A stretch of 63,958 nt of DNA, filler included, from Octopus bimaculoides (taxonomy: Eukaryota): assembly GCF_001194135.2 (NCBI RefSeq). It is 7 parts of 7 records of this genome, joined end to end, with 100 filler letters (N's around TTAATTAATTAA, not from the genome) between each part and the next. Parts side by side here need not be neighbours in the genome. Positions count along the whole stretch, not along the records: positions 32,886 to 39,846 come from NW_026394471.1; 6 more parts are not named here. One strand, 5' to 3'. A program made the translations under genes and the position numbers. This document shows, one piece after another, positions 11,731 through 39,846 of the stretch (the first letter of the stretch is position 1; each line of letters opens with the position of its first letter). Under the pieces are notes generated by a model, which did no database searches, was not told where the DNA came from, and was given only the letters and a program-made list of their open reading frames with translations.

Positions 11731-13050
11731 CTAGGTGTACCCAACGATAACTAACAAGGTCAATGAAACAAGCAGCAATAAAGTAAGTATTGAGAGGAGC
11801 GGTCCATTTATAATCACCTGTACTTTTCCCAAGAAGGCAATGTGCTCCAGCCTGGCCACAGAGCAATGACTGAAACTAATAAGCCAGTTATGAAATAAGA
11901 CACAGACCCAACAGGACAACAGCTGATTAACGACCTCACTGGTTTAGACAGCCATGACTGTGCGGTTATTGCAATCACAGGTTTTGGGTTCAGTCCTACT
12001 GCATGGCACCCTGGACAAATGTCCCCTACTATTGTCGAGTTATATTTATTATTTACTATTTTCTTTTTATTATTTCACTTGAAACTATGGCAATGGTGAG
12101 AACAACTCAGTAACCATTCACACGGATAACCAGCCACAAAGTAAATAGTATTGTGAAATAGGTAAAAAGTGATTGAGTCACACACACACACAGATACAGA
12201 TACAGGCAGACAGACAGACAGACACCTCTTCTAAAATAGTGTTAGACACCATTAAAATGCAGAAAGGTTTGAAGTGCGGATTAGATGTGAGACATATTCA
12301 AAGCATAAAGACGCAAAGGATATAGAACGAAACTGGTGCGATGAAAGATAAAGAAATAAACACACACACTATTATGTGATGCAAAACAATACCAGCTTTT
12401 GTTTGAAGTGTGTTGTGTGTTAGGTTTGTCACGTAAGGCAAACAAGAATTACAAATACATGTACACACACATGCATATGTTTATGCATATATACATGCCC
12501 ATACACATACACACAGACGCCTAAACTGTAACCCCAAAAAGTACTTTTCACGATGTAGTCCATGCAATACCAGCTCAGAATGTATAATAAAACTCTTGTA
12601 CCTGTTTTTGTCTTTTGTTTGCTCTCTCTCTTTGTTTGATAGAGGACTAGTTGGCTCAGTTTACAAACCTTTCTTGCAACATTCCAGTCACATGTTTGTA
12701 GTACCAGAGCTGTGATTTCTCAGTGCAAAGAAGCAACAGCTTGAGGTGACATTTTATAATAAGCCAGAGGTTCTTTCCATTGCCAGCGCTTACCTGTTTT
12801 TAAAGCAAGCAGGTTTTTTCTTTTGTTCCACAGGTTTGTGAAAGCACAAAGCAATCAGTCACAGATTCAACAAGAAATGTCAACATTGCCATATCAAATG
12901 ACAAGGACAAGTGTGGAATACAAGCATTCTTGCACATTCACACACAAAAACATAACTGATCTTGGTGGGATTTGAGCACAAAGGGCATGGCTGAAATAAA
13001 TACCACAAGGCATTTTGTCCTATAATCTAACAACTTTACCAATTTGTCCT

Positions 13051-32885: not shown

Positions 32886-33202
32886 GATTCCCAGACCGGG
32901 CGTTGTGAGTGTTTATACCTAAAGCTCCACGAGGCTCCAGCAGGGGATGGTGGCGAACCCTGCTGTACTCTTCCACCACAACTTTCTCTCACTCTTACTT
33001 CCTGTTTCTGTTGTGCCTGTAATTCAAAGGGTCAGCCTTATCGCACACTGTGTCACGCTGAATATCCCCGAGAACTACATTAAGGGTACACGTGTCTGTG
33101 GAGTGCTCAGCCACTTGCACGTTAATTTCACGAGCAGGCTGTTCCGTTGATCGGATCGACTGGAACCCTCGACGTCGTAAGCGACGGAGTGCCAACAACA
33201 AC
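32886..33202 (+). mobile_element. Family D-related SINE with a different central segment and (AAC)n tail
   Basis: 3' 150 bp clearly homologous to 61270-61425. The 5' end is cut by the scaffold linker. Confidence 0.7.
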
Positions 33203-33289
33203 ACAGACCCTTGGCCAAGGAGCCAGCCACGAATTGGGAGCGAACCTCGAATTGTGTGCTGTATTAAATTCAGACGAACATTCGACTCT

Positions 33290-33870
33290 GTTTCCGTCAC
33301 AGCTAATAAATAAATTTATTTTTTTTAATTCGCGGGTAGATATATACAGACCTTTGGCCCAAGGTGCCGCAAAGTGGGAACGAACTCAAAATTAAGGGCT
33401 GCGTTAAGTTTCAAACAAGCAGCCGACTTTGTTTCCGTGAAAACTCGGAGAATTAACTTCGGAGATTTCCGTAACAGCTGATAAATAGATCGCATCTCTC
33501 CGTGACAGCTTATAAATGGATATTAAATTTAGGGGTCCTAGGGGGTATATTTGGAAAGACGTGGGATTGAACCCGGAAAAATATGCTTCGTTAATTTCAG
33601 CAGCGGTTTACGGAAAGAACCGAAGTGATTTGCCGTGTTTACTATAAACAAACCTTCGGCTATTTCCGTGACAGCCGAGAAATAGATATTAAAATTACCA
33701 TCCTGGGGTAATTATATAAAGATCCTTGCTTAAGGGGGCCACTAATTAGGAACGAAACCTTAATTAAAATACTTCGTTAATTACAGCAGGGGTTTACGGA
33801 AAAAACCGAAGCGATTCCGCCGTGTTTACTATAAACAAACCTTCGGCAGTTTCCGTGACTACTCGGCAGT
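33290..33870. repeat. Diverged CpG-rich tandem repeat (period about 186 bp) with six TTTCCGT-ACAGC-like motifs
   Basis: 90-bp block at 33586-33675 recurs at 33772-33858. Motif at 33291, 33432, 33466, 33497, 33663, 33850. Confidence 0.75.
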
Positions 33871-34037
33871 TTTAACTTCCGGGTAGAATAAGCTTGTTTT
33901 TTTTCTTCTTCTTCTCCTCCTATCTAACACCTTAATCTACCATCCCCCCTCTCTTTATATCTCAACCGATGTTAGGACGAACGGAAGGGGAGGGGGAGGA
34001 ACAAACAGACATATATATGTATATATACGTATATACG

Positions 34038-34110
<73 letters not shown>

Positions 34111-34323
34111 NNNNNNNNNNNNNNNNNNNNNNNNNNNNNNNNNNNNNNNNNNNNNNNNNNNNNNNNNNNNNNNNNNNNNNNNNNNNNNNNNNNNNNNNNN
34201 NNNNNNNNNNNNNNNNNNNNNNNNNNNNNNNNNNNNNNNNNNNNNNNNNNNNNNNNNNNNNNNNNNNNNNNNNNNNNNNNNNNNNNNNNNNNNNNNNNNN
34301 NNNNNNNNNNNNNNNNNNNNNNN

Positions 34324-34609
34324 GGGCTTCTTTCAGTTTCCGTCTACCAAATCCACTCACAAGGCTTTGGTCGGCCTGTGGCTATAGTAGAAGACATTTG
34401 CCCAAGGTGCCACGCAGCGGGACTGAACCCAGAACCATGTGGTTGGTAAGCAAGCTATATATACATATATATATATATATAGGAGGGGCTTCTTTCAGTT
34501 TCAGTCTACCAAATCCACTCACAAGGCTTTGGTCGGCCCCGAGGCTATAGTAGAAGACACTTGCCCAAGGTGCCACGCAGTGGGACTGAACCCAGAACCA
34601 TGTGGTTTG

Positions 34610-34651
<42 letters not shown>

Positions 34652-34775
34652 CTTTCCGAAGTCACCACGAAGTGGGGGCTGAACCCTAGAACCACATGAC
34701 TTATAAGCAAGCTACTTATCACACAGAACCACTCCAACAACGGGGCTTCCTTTCAGTTTCCTTCTACCAAACCCC
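34324..34775 (-). repeat. Tandem SINE-A head units (head plus (TA)n), minus orientation
   Basis: Two complete heads of about 130 bp separated only by (TA)n, plus a scrambled partial copy. Confidence 0.85.
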
Positions 34776-34954
34776 ACAATCTGTTATTGAATTAATCCTT
34801 TCATTTTTTTCTCTTTTTCCAGATTAAAATCTTAAAACCGACCACTTTTTAAAATCTGCCGACGTGTGTCCTTAACAGGGAACCAGCCCCTGCTACAGCA
34901 ATAACAGACGGCCCCATACTCTTATCGCTGTGCCTTCTTCTCCAAACCCTCGCA

Positions 34955-35129
34955 ATGTTTCATTCGGCAAACCTCCAGATGTTACAGAGGACCAGGCGCC
35001 CGAATGCCCTTCGTACGTACTTTGGCCCATCGGCTATAGTCCCGGGAAGGGAGCCCTTTCGAAGGGGCCTCCTATACAGCACAGTCACAGCGGTACTCCT
35101 CGTCGTAGGGGCCGTTTTAACCTGGTTGA
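34955..35129 (+). CDS. Coding exon of a small two-TM membrane protein, PIRT/TMEM100-like (N-terminus and TM1)
   Basis: Strong acceptor TTTTTTTCTCTTTTTCCAG ends at 34822. First ATG of the exon is at 34955 (gcaATG). Open frame MFHSANLQMLQRTRRPNALRTYFGPSAIVPGREPFRRGLLYSTVTAVLLVVGAVLTWL runs to a canonical donor A|GTAAGT (phase 1). Unique, GC-richer island among repeats. Confidence 0.7.
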
Positions 35130-35186
35130 GTAAGTAATATTTCTTTAACTATTATTTTAGAAGCCTTTACAGGCCCCTTGACCGTT

Positions 35187-35674
35187 GAAAAATCGCGTGG
35201 TTCTGGGGTTCAGTCCCCACTGCGTGGTGGCTTCGGAAAGTGTCTTCTACTATAGCCTCGGGGCCGACCGAAGCCTTGTGAGTGGATATGGTAGATGGAA
35301 ACTAAAAGAAGCCCCTCCTATATATATGTGTGTGTGTATATATTTGTATAGCTTGCGTACCAGCCACATGGTTCTGGGTTCAGTCCCACTGTGTGGCACC
35401 TTGGGCAAGTGTCTTCTACTATAGCCTCGGAGCCGACCGAAGCCTTGTGAGTGGATATGGTAGACGGAAACTGAAAGAAGCCCCTCATATATATATATAT
35501 ATGTCTGTATATATATATATACATAACTTGCATACCAGCCACATGGTTCTGGGTTCAGTCCCACTGCGTGGTGGCTTTGGAAACTCTTCTACTATAGCCT
35601 CGGGGCCGACCAAAGCCTTGTGAGTGGATTTGGTAGACGGAAACTGAAAGAAGCCCCTCCTATATATATATATA
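35187..35674 (+). repeat. Tandem SINE-A head units, plus orientation, period about 175 bp
   Basis: Three heads ending GAAGCCCCTC followed by (TA)n. The array continues into an N gap. Confidence 0.9.
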
Positions 35675-36159
35675 NNNNNNNNNNNNNNNNNNNNNNNNNN
35701 NNNNNNNNNNNNNNNNNNNNNNNNNNNNNNNNNNNNNNNNNNNNNNNNNNNNNNNNNNNNNNNNNNNNNNNNNNNNNNNNNNNNNNNNNNNNNNNNNNNN
35801 NNNNNNNNNNNNNNNNNNNNNNNNNNNNNNNNNNNNNNNNNNNNNNNNNNNNNNNNNNNNNNNNNNNNNNNNNNNNNNNNNNNNNNNNNNNNNNNNNNNN
35901 NNNNNNNNNNNNNNNNNNNNNNNNNNNNNNNNNNNNNNNNNNNNNNNNNNNNNNNNNNNNNNNNNNNNNNNNNNNNNNNNNNNNNNNNNNNNNNNNNNNN
36001 NNNNNNNNNNNNNNNNNNNNNNNNNNNNNNNNNNNNNNNNNNNNNNNNNNNNNNNNNNNNNNNNNNNNNNNNNNNNNNNNNNNNNNNNNNNNNNNNNNNN
36101 NNNNNNNNNNNNNNNNNNNNNNNNNNNNNNNNNNNNNNNNNNNNNNNNNNNNNNNNNNN

Positions 36160-36298
36160 ATGTGATGGGCTTCTTTCAGTTTCCGTCTACCAAATCCACT
36201 CACAAGGCTTCGGTCAGCCCCGAGGCTATATTAGAAGACACTTGCCCAAGGTGCCACACAGTGGGACTGAACCCAGAACCATGTGGTTGGTAAGCAAG

Positions 36299-36334
<36 letters not shown>

Positions 36335-36465
36335 GAGGGGCTTCTTTCAGTTTCCGTCTACCAAATCCACTCACAAGGCTTTTGTCGGCCCGAGGCTATA
36401 GTAGAAGACACTTGCTCTCCCACCTCGCCAAGGTGCCACGCAGTGGGACCGAAGCTGGAACACTG
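36160..36465 (-). repeat. Tandem SINE-A head units, minus orientation
   Basis: Two heads separated by (TA)n. Confidence 0.85.
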
Positions 36466-36587
36466 TGGGTTAGCAAATACACTCCTTTTGGTTCAAACCT
36501 CACCTTTACATTCTAATCTAACTAATTAAAATTAACGAACAAACACACACATAACGAGATATTACTAATTACTCTGATTTCTTTCAG

Positions 36588-36730
36588 GTTTCAACAATAT
36601 ATTCGGGGCCCGTACGTCCATGACCGGCCCCTTGCTAATCGCCTTATCACTGGGCCTTAGTTTTTGTTCCCTCCGACAGTTTATAATCGCTAGAAAACAA
36701 CGACGCAGGGCCACACGCGAACAAATCAGG
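36588..36730 (+). CDS. Next coding exon of the PIRT/TMEM100-like gene (loop, TM2, basic tail)
   Basis: Acceptor CTAATTACTCTGATTTCTTTCAG with a branch-like CTAAT. Phase 1 matches the previous exon: (S)FNNIFGARTSMTGPLLIALSLGLSFCSLRQFIIARKQRRRATREQIR. The 3' end is uncertain: donor AGG|GTTCGT after 36730, or read-through to TAA at 36797-36799. Confidence 0.7.
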
Positions 36731-36857
36731 GTTCGTATATATATTAATATTATTTTCACACGACCCTACCCACCCTTAACAGTATTTGAGCTTTCGTAAC
36801 CCCCATTTCGTTAAACCCATTGTAATTAAATGGTCCCTAATTCTTTCACATCATCAT

Positions 36858-37442
36858 CATCATCATTTAACGTCCGCTTTTGGACGGTTTCACTGAGGAC
36901 TGGTGAAACCGGATGGCAACACCAGGCTCCAATCTAATGTGGCAGGGTTTCTACAGCTGGATGCCCGTCCTAACGCCAACCACTCAGAGAGTGTAGTGGG
37001 TGCTTTGTTGGACGATTTGACTGAGGACTGGTGAAACCAGATGGCTGCACCAGGGTCCGATATGATTTGGCAGAGTTTCTACAGCTGGATGCCCTTCCTA
37101 ANNNNNNNNNNGTGTAGCCACCTGGTTCACCAGTTCTTAGTCAAAACATCCAACAAAGCACCCACTATACTCTCTGAGTGGTTGGCGTTAGGAAGGGCAT
37201 CCAGCTGTAGAAACTCTGCCAAATCATATTGGACCTTGGCGTTGCCATCTGGTTTCACCAGTCCTCAGTCAAATCCTCCAACAAAGCACCCAGTGCACTC
37301 TCGGAGTGGTTGGCGTTAGGAAGGGCATCCAGCTGTAGAAACCCTGCCAGATCATATCAGACCCTGGTGCAGCCATCCGGTTTCACCAGTCTTTAGTCAA
37401 ACCGTCCAATCCATGCTAACATGGGAAAGCGGACGTTAAACG
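36858..37442. repeat. Fold-back of family C arrays
   Basis: Left arm 36865-37100 (2 units, minus) and right arm 37112-37442 (plus) around an 11-N gap. Outer ends TTTAACGTCCGCTTT / AAAGCGGACGTTAAA. Confidence 0.75.
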
Positions 37443-37775
37443 TACATAAAGTAAATAAAGAACGATTTTTCAAATTACAGCCTTAAAACTGGGTCACCGT
37501 GTCCCATATCAATCAGGGTTAACGACCACGTTGATGAATTTTGACACACAAAGAAATAATTAATTGACGCTAATTATATAGATATTACCTCACTAATAAT
37601 TACGGTCACGCTGGTGCAATGCCTTAAGCTAATTAAAACCGTTTAAGACGTCCTCATGGCTATTCTAATTACGTTTTTCAAACCATAATTAAGGAATTTG
37701 GAAACCATGTAATATATCTAAGCCCACGATGTGATCTAAGCCCTAGATCTTAAAAAGGGGACCGAGTGCTGTTAG

Positions 37776-37797
37776 CCCTAACCCTAACCCTAACCCT
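37776..37797 (+). repeat. Short interstitial telomere-like (CCCTAA)3 tract
   Basis: CCCTAACCCTAACCCTAACCCT. Confidence 0.6.
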
Positions 37798-38114
37798 GAC
37801 ATCGTAAAGTTCCCGACTAGATCACCACAACAGCAAGATGAACATCTTGTAAGATGGATATAGCAAAGAAAATTGAGGGTTAATATATTTAAAAAAACCG
37901 TAACCAGGCTTGATTTATCAGTGACCCCAAAAGCTGAACCTAGATGGTCTTAATGCCTATTTAATTTCGTCTCCTGGACCCTAGTTTATCAGTTCTGGGG
38001 GTCTTTATTACAAGTGGCAATTTAGAATAAGTATTGAGGTTCATTTAATCTATATATGCCTTACGACAAAAACTGATATTTAGGTCATGGTGACCTATTT
38101 TCGTGAAGATTTTG

Positions 38115-38845
38115 GCTGAGGACTGGTGAAACGGAATGGCTGCACCATGCTCCAATCTACAGCTGGAGGCCCTTCCTAACGCCAACCACTCCGAGAGTGT
38201 AGTGGGTGCTTTGTTGGACGATGTATAGTGGGTGCTTTGTTGGATATATTGATTGAGGACTGGTGGACCAGATGGCTACACCAGGCTCCAATCTACACTT
38301 GGATGCCCTTCCTAACGCCAACCACTCCGTGAGTGTAGTGGGTGCTTTGTTGTACGATTTGACTGAGGACTGGTGAAACCAGATGGCTGCACGAGGCTCC
38401 AATCTACTCCTAGATGCCCTTCCTAATGCCAACCACTCCGAGAGTGTAGTGGGTGCTTTGTTGGATGATTTGACTGGGGACTGGTGAACCAGATGGCTGC
38501 ACCTGGCTCCAATCTACACCTGGATGCCCTTCCTAACGCCAACCACACCGAGAGTGTAGTGGGTGCTTTGTTGGACGATTTGACTAAGGACTGGTGAAAC
38601 TAAATGGCTACACCAGGCTCCAATCTGATCTGGCAGAGTTTCTACAGCTGGATGCCCTTCCTAACTCCAACGCTACAATAGGCTGGACGGTTTGACTGAG
38701 GACTTGTGAACCAGATGGCTACACCAAGCTCCAATCTGATCTGGCAGAGTTTCTACAGCTGGATGCCTTTCCTAACCCCAACGCTACAATGGGCTGGACA
38801 GTTTGACTGAGGACTTGTGAACCAGATGGCTGCACCAGGCTCCAA
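38115..38845 (-). repeat. About 110-bp satellite derived from the family C internal segment, 7 units
   Basis: GACT(G/T)GTG anchor at 38121, 38258, 38368, 38479, 38589, 38701, 38812. Confidence 0.9.
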
Positions 38846-38849
38846 TCTT

Positions 38850-39703
38850 ACACTTGCCCAAGGTGCGACGCAGTGGAACTCAACCCGGAACCATGTGGTT
38901 GGTAAGCATGCTATATATATATATATACAGACATATATATATATATATATAGGAGGGGCTTCTTTCAGTTTCCTTCCACCAAATCCACTCACAAGGCTTC
39001 AGTCGGCCCGTGGCTATAGTAGAAGACACTTGCCCGTGGTGCCACGCAGTGGGGGCTGAACCCAGAACCATGTGGTTGGTACGCAAGCTATATATATATG
39101 TGTATGTATATATATNNNNNNNNNNNNNNNNNNNNNNNNNNNNNNNNNNNNNNNNNNNNNNNNNNNNNNNNNNNNNNNNNNNNNNNNNNNNNNNNNNNNN
39201 NNNNNNNNNNNNNNNNNNNNNNNNNNNNNNNNNNNNNNNNNNNNNNNNNNNNNNNNNNNNNNNNNNNNNNNNNNNNNNNNNNNNNNNNNNNNNNNNNNNN
39301 NNNNNNNNNNNNNNNNNNNNNNNNNNNNNNNNNNNNNNNNNNNNNNNNNNNNNNNNNNNNNNNNNNNNNNNNNNNNNNNNNNNNNNNNNNNNNNNNNNNN
39401 NNNNNNNNNNNNNNNNNNNNNNNNNNNNNNNNNNNNNNNNNNNNNNNNNNNNNNNNNNNNNNNNNNNNNNNNNNNNNNNNNNNNNNNNNNNNNNNNNNNN
39501 NNNNNNNNNNNNNNNNNNNNNNNNNNNNNNNNNNNNNNNNNNNNNNNNNNNNNNNNNNNNNNNNNNNNNNNNNNNNNNNNNNNNNNNNNNNNNNNNNNNN
39601 NNNNNNNNNNNNNNNNNNNNNNNNNNNNNNNNNNNNNNNNNNNNNNNNNNNNNNNNNNNNNNNNNNNNNNNNNNNNNNNNNNNNNNNNNNNNNNNNNNNN
39701 NNN

Positions 39704-39741
<38 letters not shown>

Positions 39742-39846
39742 CGATGGGCTTCTTTCAGTTTCCTTCTACCAAATCCACTCACAAGGCTTCGGTCAATCCG
39801 AGGCTATAGTAGAAGACACTTGCCCAAGGTGCCATGCAGCGGGACT
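38850..39846 (-). repeat. Further SINE-A head tandem units spanning an N gap
   Basis: Units at about 38850-38910, 38945-39090 and 39742-39846. Confidence 0.8.

Follow-up and report, generated by a model that had tools for sequence, protein, structure and literature searches.

Among the described systems closest to the protein discussed here are PIRT, which contacts TRP channels with a similar two-helix hairpin, and the NDFIP and Rcr proteins, which bring Nedd4-type ubiquitin ligases to the membrane with other anchors. The protein itself is encoded in the genome of Octopus bimaculoides (NCBI RefSeq assembly GCF_001194135.2), within a window of 63,958 nucleotides (nt), filler included, that joins seven parts of that genome. 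Positions 32886-39846 of the window, coming from NW_026394471.1, are a piece of repeat-rich animal DNA with many gaps, and it is here that a sequence-only reading had placed a hidden spliced gene for a PIRT/TMEM100-like protein with two transmembrane (TM) helices, a candidate modulator of TRP channels. In PIRT, an N-terminal R-S-E-S site is 100% conserved, helix 1 carries a CRAC cholesterol motif (L/V..Y..K/R) at its outer end, and the C-terminal helix continues after helix 2 (PMC7175203). Octopus TRPV and TRPA channels, in turn, are being characterised as nociceptors (PMC12919962). Judged by their homologues, the two octopus exons are the start of the octopus orthologue in an unnamed, Pfam-less family of lophotrochozoan proteins. 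The hairpin that they encode is PIRT-like, with a faint but specific resemblance, and it is probably a remote relative of the hairpin of PIRT. The explanation that we favour, and which we regard as moderately probable when all its parts are taken jointly, is that the locus holds the first two coding exons of an orthologue whose product would be a membrane-anchored adaptor with a remote PIRT-like hairpin, and that the available gene model is truncated.

Exons and introns of the octopus gene

Exon 1 and exon 2, read from the sequence, joined in phase 1 and translated, give the peptide MFHS...LTWLSFNNIFGARTSMTGPLLIALSLGLSFCSLRQFIIARKQRRR..., identical to that of the sequence-only reading. The parts of the gene are arranged along the piece as follows.

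34823..34954, plus strand: putative 5' untranslated part of the first coding exon, with a possible acceptor ...ttttccag/ at 34822
34955..35129, plus strand: coding exon 1, 175 nt, ending in phase 1 (translation, homologue alignment)
35130..36587, plus strand: intron 1, GTAAGT...tttctttcag, its length approximate, as the size of the N gap is an estimate
36588..36730, plus strand: coding exon 2, 143 nt, phase 1 to phase 0 (translation, tblastn)
36731..36799, plus strand: start of intron 2, donor CAGG/GTTCGT in phase 0 at 36730/36731

We infer the 5' limit of the first exon at 34823. Frame 0 has a stop on the 5' side, and from there to 34955 the translation shows no ATG in frame; the one at 34955 is thus the first after the stop. 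Exon 1 contains the code for the conserved MFH at the beginning of the protein, for the motifs ALRTY and EPFRRG, and for helix 1 (LLYSTVTAVLLVVGAVLTWL); directly after it stands a donor of consensus type, TTGA/GTAAGT, at 35129/35130. Exon 2 begins behind a pyrimidine-rich acceptor, tttctttcag/G (tctgatttctttcag/G), at 36587/36588, and supplies the short loop (FNNIFGARTSMT), helix 2, which opens with GP, and the basic patch ARKQRRRATREQIR. For these exons, the list of open reading frames (ORFs) contains only the 60-aa (amino acid) ORF of exon 1 (34955..35137) and an internal-Met ORF within exon 2. When the relatives described below were compared with the piece by tblastn, E values from 1e-9 to 1e-24 were obtained per exon, which chance would not produce; exon 1 was matched at 34955-35128 (E as low as 6e-24), the matches to exon 2 began at 36587 and ended at 36730-36739, and past 36739 no homologue match with a significant E value was found.

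The gene structure of the limpet Lottia gigantea gives the same picture. Its exon 1 (178 nt, phase 1) ends at the same codon as octopus exon 1 (175 nt), and the end of its exon 2 (140 nt, phase 0) aligns to octopus position 36730, the end of a 143-nt exon. The first of the two conserved introns thus follows the LTWLG/S codon in phase 1, while the second, in phase 0, lies some 14 residues past the basic patch. The proposal that the two islands are real exons with phase-matched splice sites is borne out, as the translation gives the claimed peptide and both the homologues and the Lottia introns agree with it. The proposed C-terminus has to be given up: because the Lottia exon 2 end aligns at 36730, a phase-0 donor (GTTCGT) is present there and the homologue matches stop, exon 2 ends at 36730, and the additional C-terminal residues up to the stop at 36799, VRIYINIIFTRPYPPLTVFELS, are read-through of intron 2. 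The gene was not hidden either. A public predicted protein of 106 aa, UPI0006959765 (UniParc/MetaClust), equals exon 1 plus exon 2 exactly to 36730, and the gene model is therefore public already, truncated and unnamed.

The assembly gap between the exons has to be considered as well. The run of N at 35675-36159 lies wholly within intron 1 and is flanked by repeat copies in opposite orientation. Across the exon 1/exon 2 junction, 29 relatives are colinear with the octopus peptide with zero missing residues, as in octopus LTWLS/FNNIFGA and Sepia LTWMG/FNNVFSG, and homologues from 20 or more species align to the two exons back to back. Given this and the identical position and phase of the Lottia intron, no exon for the conserved protein lies in the gap, and since the splice sites set the frame, the reading frame is independent of the length of the gap. 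The join of the two exons across the gap is therefore sound. In three gastropod isoforms (P0018, P0028 and P0033), 3-4 extra residues (SRR, IRRS, LYM) stand exactly at this junction, which suggests alternative use of splice sites at the conserved intron that would lengthen the extracellular loop; this, too, speaks for the join.

Lophotrochozoan relatives and the anatomy of the protein

The family surfaced in an exhaustive HMMER (phmmer) search of 1.84 billion protein representatives; word-index homology searches had returned the fragment itself and, with a profile, five proteins. The phmmer search gave 29 proteins at E<=1e-3, of which 14 were at E<=1e-10, the best having E 1.6e-35; each of them matches the query over its residues 1 to about 100 with its own N-terminus. 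For more than 20 representatives, at E values from 1.6e-35 to 1e-7, residues 1 to about 100 of the query match residues 1 to about 100 of the target, and these N-terminal 100 residues are colinear with the octopus protein at 40-64% identity. Members were found in gastropods (Haliotis, Lottia, Patella, Aplysia with two paralogues, Lymnaea, Biomphalaria, Pomacea, Arion, Nucella, Candidula, Elysia), in bivalves (Mytilus, Argopecten, Solemya, Mercenaria), in the brachiopod Lingula and in the cuttlefish Sepia, along with a paralogue in Octopus vulgaris. Among the records are Lottia gigantea LOTGIDRAFT_161553 (XP_009055167.1), Aplysia californica LOC101850997 (XP_005110660.1), Haliotis LOC124283681 and Argopecten XP_069117460.1. 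Every named member is labelled uncharacterized or hypothetical, lengths range from 135 to 716 aa, and the gathering score of no Pfam family is reached by any member.

The nearest relative is a product of Sepia esculenta (P0031, 266/267 aa, 62-64% identity), which shows 62% identity to octopus over all 106 aa with one 1-residue gap. Its coding sequence is uninterrupted on contigs of 1.1-1.5 kb from at least 11 sequencing runs, two of which are published Sepia esculenta larval RNA-seq. The conserved cephalopod orthologue that the sequence-only reading had called for was thus found, and it is transcribed. The O. vulgaris paralogue (P0021, 196 aa; L002:10001-10591 of OX597819.1) is intronless and 41% identical in the hairpin; it looks like a retrocopy that has retained LPSY and PPSY motifs.

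The order of conserved elements within the family is MFH, ALRTF, KEPLRRG, helix 1, the loop FxDVFGG, G72-P opening helix 2, and RQFxxARKR. MFH stands at residue 1 in all relatives, and G38, G52, T56, G72 and F90, invariant or nearly so in the family, are all present in octopus; G52 and T56, both in helix 1, and G72 are the three invariant columns. The AlphaFold2 (AF2) model, built on a 24-sequence alignment, contains helices at residues 33-60 and 71-105 (pLDDT 70-82, pTM 0.36) and a disordered N-terminus, to which the exons give a basic composition. The loop between the helices is about 10 residues long and carries one basic residue, basic residues lie on both outer flanks of the hairpin, and the patch RKQRRR comes directly after helix 2, which in the AF2 model runs through the patch. 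The earlier description of the topology, with TM1, a short loop, TM2 opening with GP and then a polybasic patch, is in agreement with both the translation and the AF2 helices. Both termini would be cytosolic according to the positive-inside rule, by which basic residues after a membrane helix are a generic feature.

Past the end of the octopus fragment, a T[VI]IMD-like motif follows in the full-length relatives near residue 130, and after it two [PL]PxY motifs near residues 150 and 182, about 30 residues apart; most of the close relatives have these motifs. In subfamily A, the closest to the octopus gene, P151, P152, Y154, P182, P183 and Y185 are nearly invariant. The tail is disordered in the relatives, extends 30-600 residues beyond the octopus end, and in some of them terminates in QETI, VTI or VTL. 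No tail exon was detected in 32886-39846: tblastn of 40 relatives was empty in this respect, and a hidden Markov model (HMM) of the tail, run on six-frame fragments, gave 1.8 bits at best. Introns of cephalopods are often far longer than 3 kb. Most likely the octopus model of 106 aa lacks its 3' part because the scaffold is short and gapped.

A different account of the same truncation is that the exons are the leftovers of a decaying or duplicated gene, or an over-called model, giving no functional product. Such a dead or partial copy would fit with the 106-aa fragment being all that is on record, with the lack of tail exons within 3.1 kb downstream, with the repeat-swamped locus, and with the intronless O. 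vulgaris paralogue, which shows that the family has been copied in octopods. However, both exons are open and have canonical splice sites and conserved phases, G38, G52, T56, G72 and F90 are kept, the peptide is 62% identical to the Sepia orthologue, which is expressed, and with the long introns of cephalopods the tail exons are expected to be missing from a 7-kb piece. We consider the dead copy extremely improbable.

The hairpin and tail compared with PIRT, TMEM100 and PY-motif adaptors

Among 24,736 Pfam families, PIRT (PF15099) is the best match of the octopus peptide, with E 6.5e-4 and 19.9 bits, residues 39-102 being aligned to positions 50-114 of the 128-position profile. PIRT is also the family matched by most relatives, 15 of 24 N-terminal domains at E<=10, none of them above 19.9 bits. 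For a comparison of profiles, 135 real PIRTs from mammals, birds and reptiles were retrieved, all with PF15099, and 28 diverse ones were aligned. A human PIRT sequence served as bait only (its best retrieved match, at 94% identity, is named Macaca nemestrina PIRT), and the human sequences of TMEM100, TMEM51 and IFITM3 were checked by their Pfam scores of 231.8, 331.3 and 103.4 bits, respectively. The hhalign comparison of the family with the 28 PIRTs gave a probability of 91.8% (P 7e-7, score 42.4, 68 columns). The alignment begins at residue 33 and spans the segment before helix 1, helix 1, the loop, helix 2 and the basic patch. When the octopus sequence was left out, the score was 44.2 and the probability 89.8%. 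With one of the profiles reversed, the score was 13-15; 150 shuffles of PIRT columns within each helix, loop or tail segment gave a mean of 16.6 with a standard deviation (SD) of 4.1 and a maximum of 31.3; and the unrelated two-helix proteins TMEM51 and IFITM3 scored 15.3 and 13.7. In the alignment, the invariant G52, T56 and G72 of the family fall on the invariant G69, T73 and G93 of PIRT, and P73 on P94.

PIRT and the octopus protein have in common a two-helix hairpin with both ends cytosolic (by prediction in octopus). In both, a basic pair and a helix breaker precede helix 1, this helix contains G-x-x-x-T, (M)xGP opens helix 2, and a basic stretch continues it. The differences are equally clear. 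The octopus loop is 4 residues shorter than that of PIRT, the N-terminal PIRT block (SPESKDLLxSxTASxLCxSSRSESxW) is found neither in the octopus peptide nor in any relative, and the octopus stretch aligned to the PIRT CRAC motif (LAYTLK), LTWLSFNNIFGAR, has no tyrosine. PIRT is about 130-140 aa long and ends about 25 residues past helix 2, whereas the relatives reach 135-716 aa with long PPxY tails. The octopus basic helix ARKQRRRATREQIR, which extends to residue 105 in the AF2 model, resembles the C-terminal helix of PIRT, which binds PIP2 and calmodulin, in charge and not in sequence. PIRT itself modulates TRPV1 and TRPM8 and is expressed in peripheral sensory neurons.

One of the ways in which this resemblance might be understood is that the octopus gene is a true molluscan PIRT/TMEM100 orthologue, a short protein whose basic C-terminus would bind phosphoinositides and which would tune TRP channels of sensory neurons. 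It is supported by PIRT being the best and most recurrent Pfam match, by the hhalign probability of 92% with coinciding invariant residues, and by RKQRRR lying directly after helix 2 with the helix continuing through the patch (AF2), as does the C-terminal helix of PIRT (PMC7175203). However, 19.9 bits is below the PIRT gathering score of 30.6 bits, so that by the Pfam cut-off the octopus protein is not a member of the PIRT family. The block SxTASxLCxSSRSxSxW and the CRAC-aligned tyrosine are absent, relatives of 135-716 aa with PPxY tails stand against a PIRT of about 135 aa, and the TMEM100 link reaches a probability of 50-57%. No orthology is demonstrable across the gap between Lophotrochozoa and vertebrates, and a literature search for PIRT with mollusc, octopus or Aplysia gave no paper mentioning PIRT. 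True orthology is, in our view, very unlikely.

Human TMEM100 reaches 19.3 bits when run against the Pfam model of PIRT, and hhalign of TMEM100 against PIRT gives 89.7%; set beside 19.9 bits and 91.8%, these values put the mollusc hairpin and TMEM100 at about the same distance from PIRT. Compared directly, the family and TMEM100 are less similar. At E<=10 the octopus peptide had no match to TMEM100 (PF16311, gathering score 34 bits), which was matched by 4 of the 24 relatives at that threshold (best E 0.039). In hhalign, the family and TMEM100 gave a probability of 50-57% and a score of 29-30 over 36-37 columns of helix 1 and the loop, a score within the range of the best PIRT-control shuffles (maximum 31.3). 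TMEM100 shares the type of hairpin, the G-x-x-x-T of helix 1 and the basic patch after helix 2, but lacks GP at helix 2. Of the proposed membership of a PIRT/TMEM100 family, the likeness to PIRT stands as the best Pfam match and by the hhalign probability of 91.8%; membership proper does not, with a score below the cut-off and the N-terminal block absent, and the TMEM100 half is weak.

The tails of the relatives invite a comparison with PY-motif adaptors. NDFIP1/2, yeast Rcr1/2, TMEM51 and the relatives all combine a small membrane anchor with a disordered cytosolic tail containing at least two [PL]PxY motifs. TMEM51 (PF15345) was considered as a vertebrate counterpart on the grounds of its two TM helices and PY tail with YxxPSYxEV, and was rejected, as hhalign gave 0.5-6% and blastp matched the motifs only. 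The octopus peptide has no TMEM51 match in Pfam. The O. vulgaris paralogue P0021 reaches 21.7 bits against TMEM51 (cut-off 25.5) through TM2 and the PY motif, and YYVPSYEEV of TMEM51 resembles the family motif context YAPPSYSEV, but the hairpins are unrelated (0.5% for the N-terminal domain against TMEM51). Weak matches to RCR appeared among the relatives in the Pfam scan (E 0.003-0.006). The likeness to PY-motif adaptors is confined to short motifs (hhalign 3-6%), and the tail is a feature of the relatives, not of the octopus piece. In a search of PDB sequences, a hairpin of cytochrome oxidase subunit 3 was also met (E 0.06-2); it was dismissed as a compositional match at noise level.

It might also be that the likeness to PIRT is convergent, and that the protein is an independent lophotrochozoan invention working entirely through its PPxY/PDZ-ligand tail as a Nedd4-adaptor analogue of NDFIP, RCR or TMEM51. 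Tightly packed helices require small residues and a helix-starting GP. The similarity comprises about 68 hydrophobic-rich columns, the Pfam match is below threshold, and no relatives outside Lophotrochozoa were found at E<=1e-3; the tail motifs, in turn, are nearly invariant in subfamily A, and there are sub-threshold matches to RCR (E 0.003) and, for the O. vulgaris paralogue, to TMEM51 (21.7 bits). Against convergence, the observed score lies 6 SD over within-segment shuffles that preserve the composition of the helices, unrelated two-helix proteins score 13-15, and three invariant residues land on invariant residues of PIRT. TMEM51, moreover, is unrelated beyond the PY motif (hhalign 3-6%). 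We regard a convergent origin as rather unlikely, and keep to the remote PIRT-like hairpin of a membrane-anchored adaptor.

In this adaptor, the hairpin and the basic patch would hold the protein at the inner leaflet near acidic lipids, possibly beside partner channels or receptors, by analogy with PIRT. The PPxY tail would recruit WW-domain proteins, such as Nedd4-type ubiquitin ligases, and the PDZ-ligand-like C-terminus (QETI or VTI) would recruit PDZ scaffolds; the ligases and scaffolds so recruited might control the abundance or placement of the partner. The recognition of PPxY by WW domains and of a C-terminal S/T-x-hydrophobic motif by PDZ domains is established, and it is from this knowledge that the mechanism is inferred. 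The role in TRP modulation, sensory or nociceptive, that was suggested earlier is speculation.

Several points weigh against the explanation that we favour. The PIRT match is below the gathering score, the similarity amounts to about 68 mostly hydrophobic columns, and the convergence of a tightly packed hairpin is possible given the hole between Lophotrochozoa and vertebrates, in which phmmer found no intermediates at E<=1e-3 among its 1.84 billion representatives. The PPxY and the C-terminal T-x-I are short motifs whose binding is predicted, subfamily B is without PPxY, and the tail sequence is absent from the piece, so that for octopus it is deduced from Sepia and the other relatives. In the databases searched, no full-length Octopus orthologue was present, the 106-aa fragment being the sole record, although the orthologue of Sepia assembles readily from RNA-seq; either the current Octopus annotations lack the gene or model it wrongly, or the word-index search fell short. 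When contigs encoding exactly the 106-aa peptide were looked up, none was on record, and so this look-up yields no octopus locus or RNA as direct evidence.

What is new here is that a conserved lophotrochozoan family has been defined and that its hairpin has been linked to PIRT, a link which is statistically supported and unproven. The literature search returned no paper that mentions a relative of PIRT or TMEM100 in any invertebrate. If the hairpin homology is true, then this would be the first invertebrate relative of pain-related TRP modulators, an ancestral form with a ubiquitin-ligase-recruiting tail would be suggested, and the octopus protein would be a candidate accessory subunit for octopus TRPV and TRPA channels. 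A wider proposal can also be formulated, in which PIRT, TMEM100 and the lophotrochozoan family would make up one ancient bilaterian hairpin superfamily. The ancestral protein would have coupled channels or receptors to Nedd4-type ligases and scaffolds, molluscs would have kept the hairpin, which faces channels and lipids, joined to a PPxY/PDZ-ligand tail, the vertebrate members would be tail-less derivatives, and cephalopods would possess a sensory-channel regulator of PIRT type; as a whole, this is distinctly improbable. If the likeness is not homology, there is still a conserved, expressed, Pfam-less family of lophotrochozoan membrane proteins, defined by sequence, motifs and intron positions. 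Even without homology to PIRT, the analysis points to an octopus gene model that is truncated and needs repair.

Repeats and gaps around the exons

Both exons are in unique DNA and are bounded by SINE-like (short interspersed nuclear element) repeats of 163-170 nt with (TA)n tracts. The repeats of the piece are the following.

34324-34650, plus strand: SINE-like unit, 163-170 nt long with (TA)n at the end of every copy; short tandem array
35198-35674, minus strand: SINE-like unit, in intron 1 on the 5' side of the N gap
36164-36476, plus strand: SINE-like unit, in intron 1 on the 3' side of the N gap
38850-39115 and 39740-39846, plus strand: SINE-like unit; short tandem arrays
36880-37101, plus strand: second repeat family, 110-128-nt units in tandem arrays
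37116-37440, minus strand: second repeat family, 110-128-nt units
38100-38850, plus strand: second repeat family, 110-128-nt units
37776-37799: interstitial telomere-like run, (CCCTAA)3 then CCCTGA
32886-33192: dispersed repeat at the left end of the piece, 87% identity over 320 nt to O. vulgaris L002:7566-7879

Scans with ARAGORN and Rfam found no tRNA and no known RNA anywhere in the piece, the SINE-like unit included, and these repeats are therefore left unclassified. The assembly gaps fall in or beside the (TA)n tracts of this unit, which also recurs several times in the O. vulgaris locus L002 with 80-92% identity. Since repeat families of the piece recur at such identities around a gene on an O. 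vulgaris chromosome, the piece is of octopus-type genome. Two arrays of the second family, in opposite orientation on either side of a gap of 10 N at 37103-37112, form an inverted repeat. This family, too, is present in O. vulgaris L002, at about 12190-12325 and 20260-20396.

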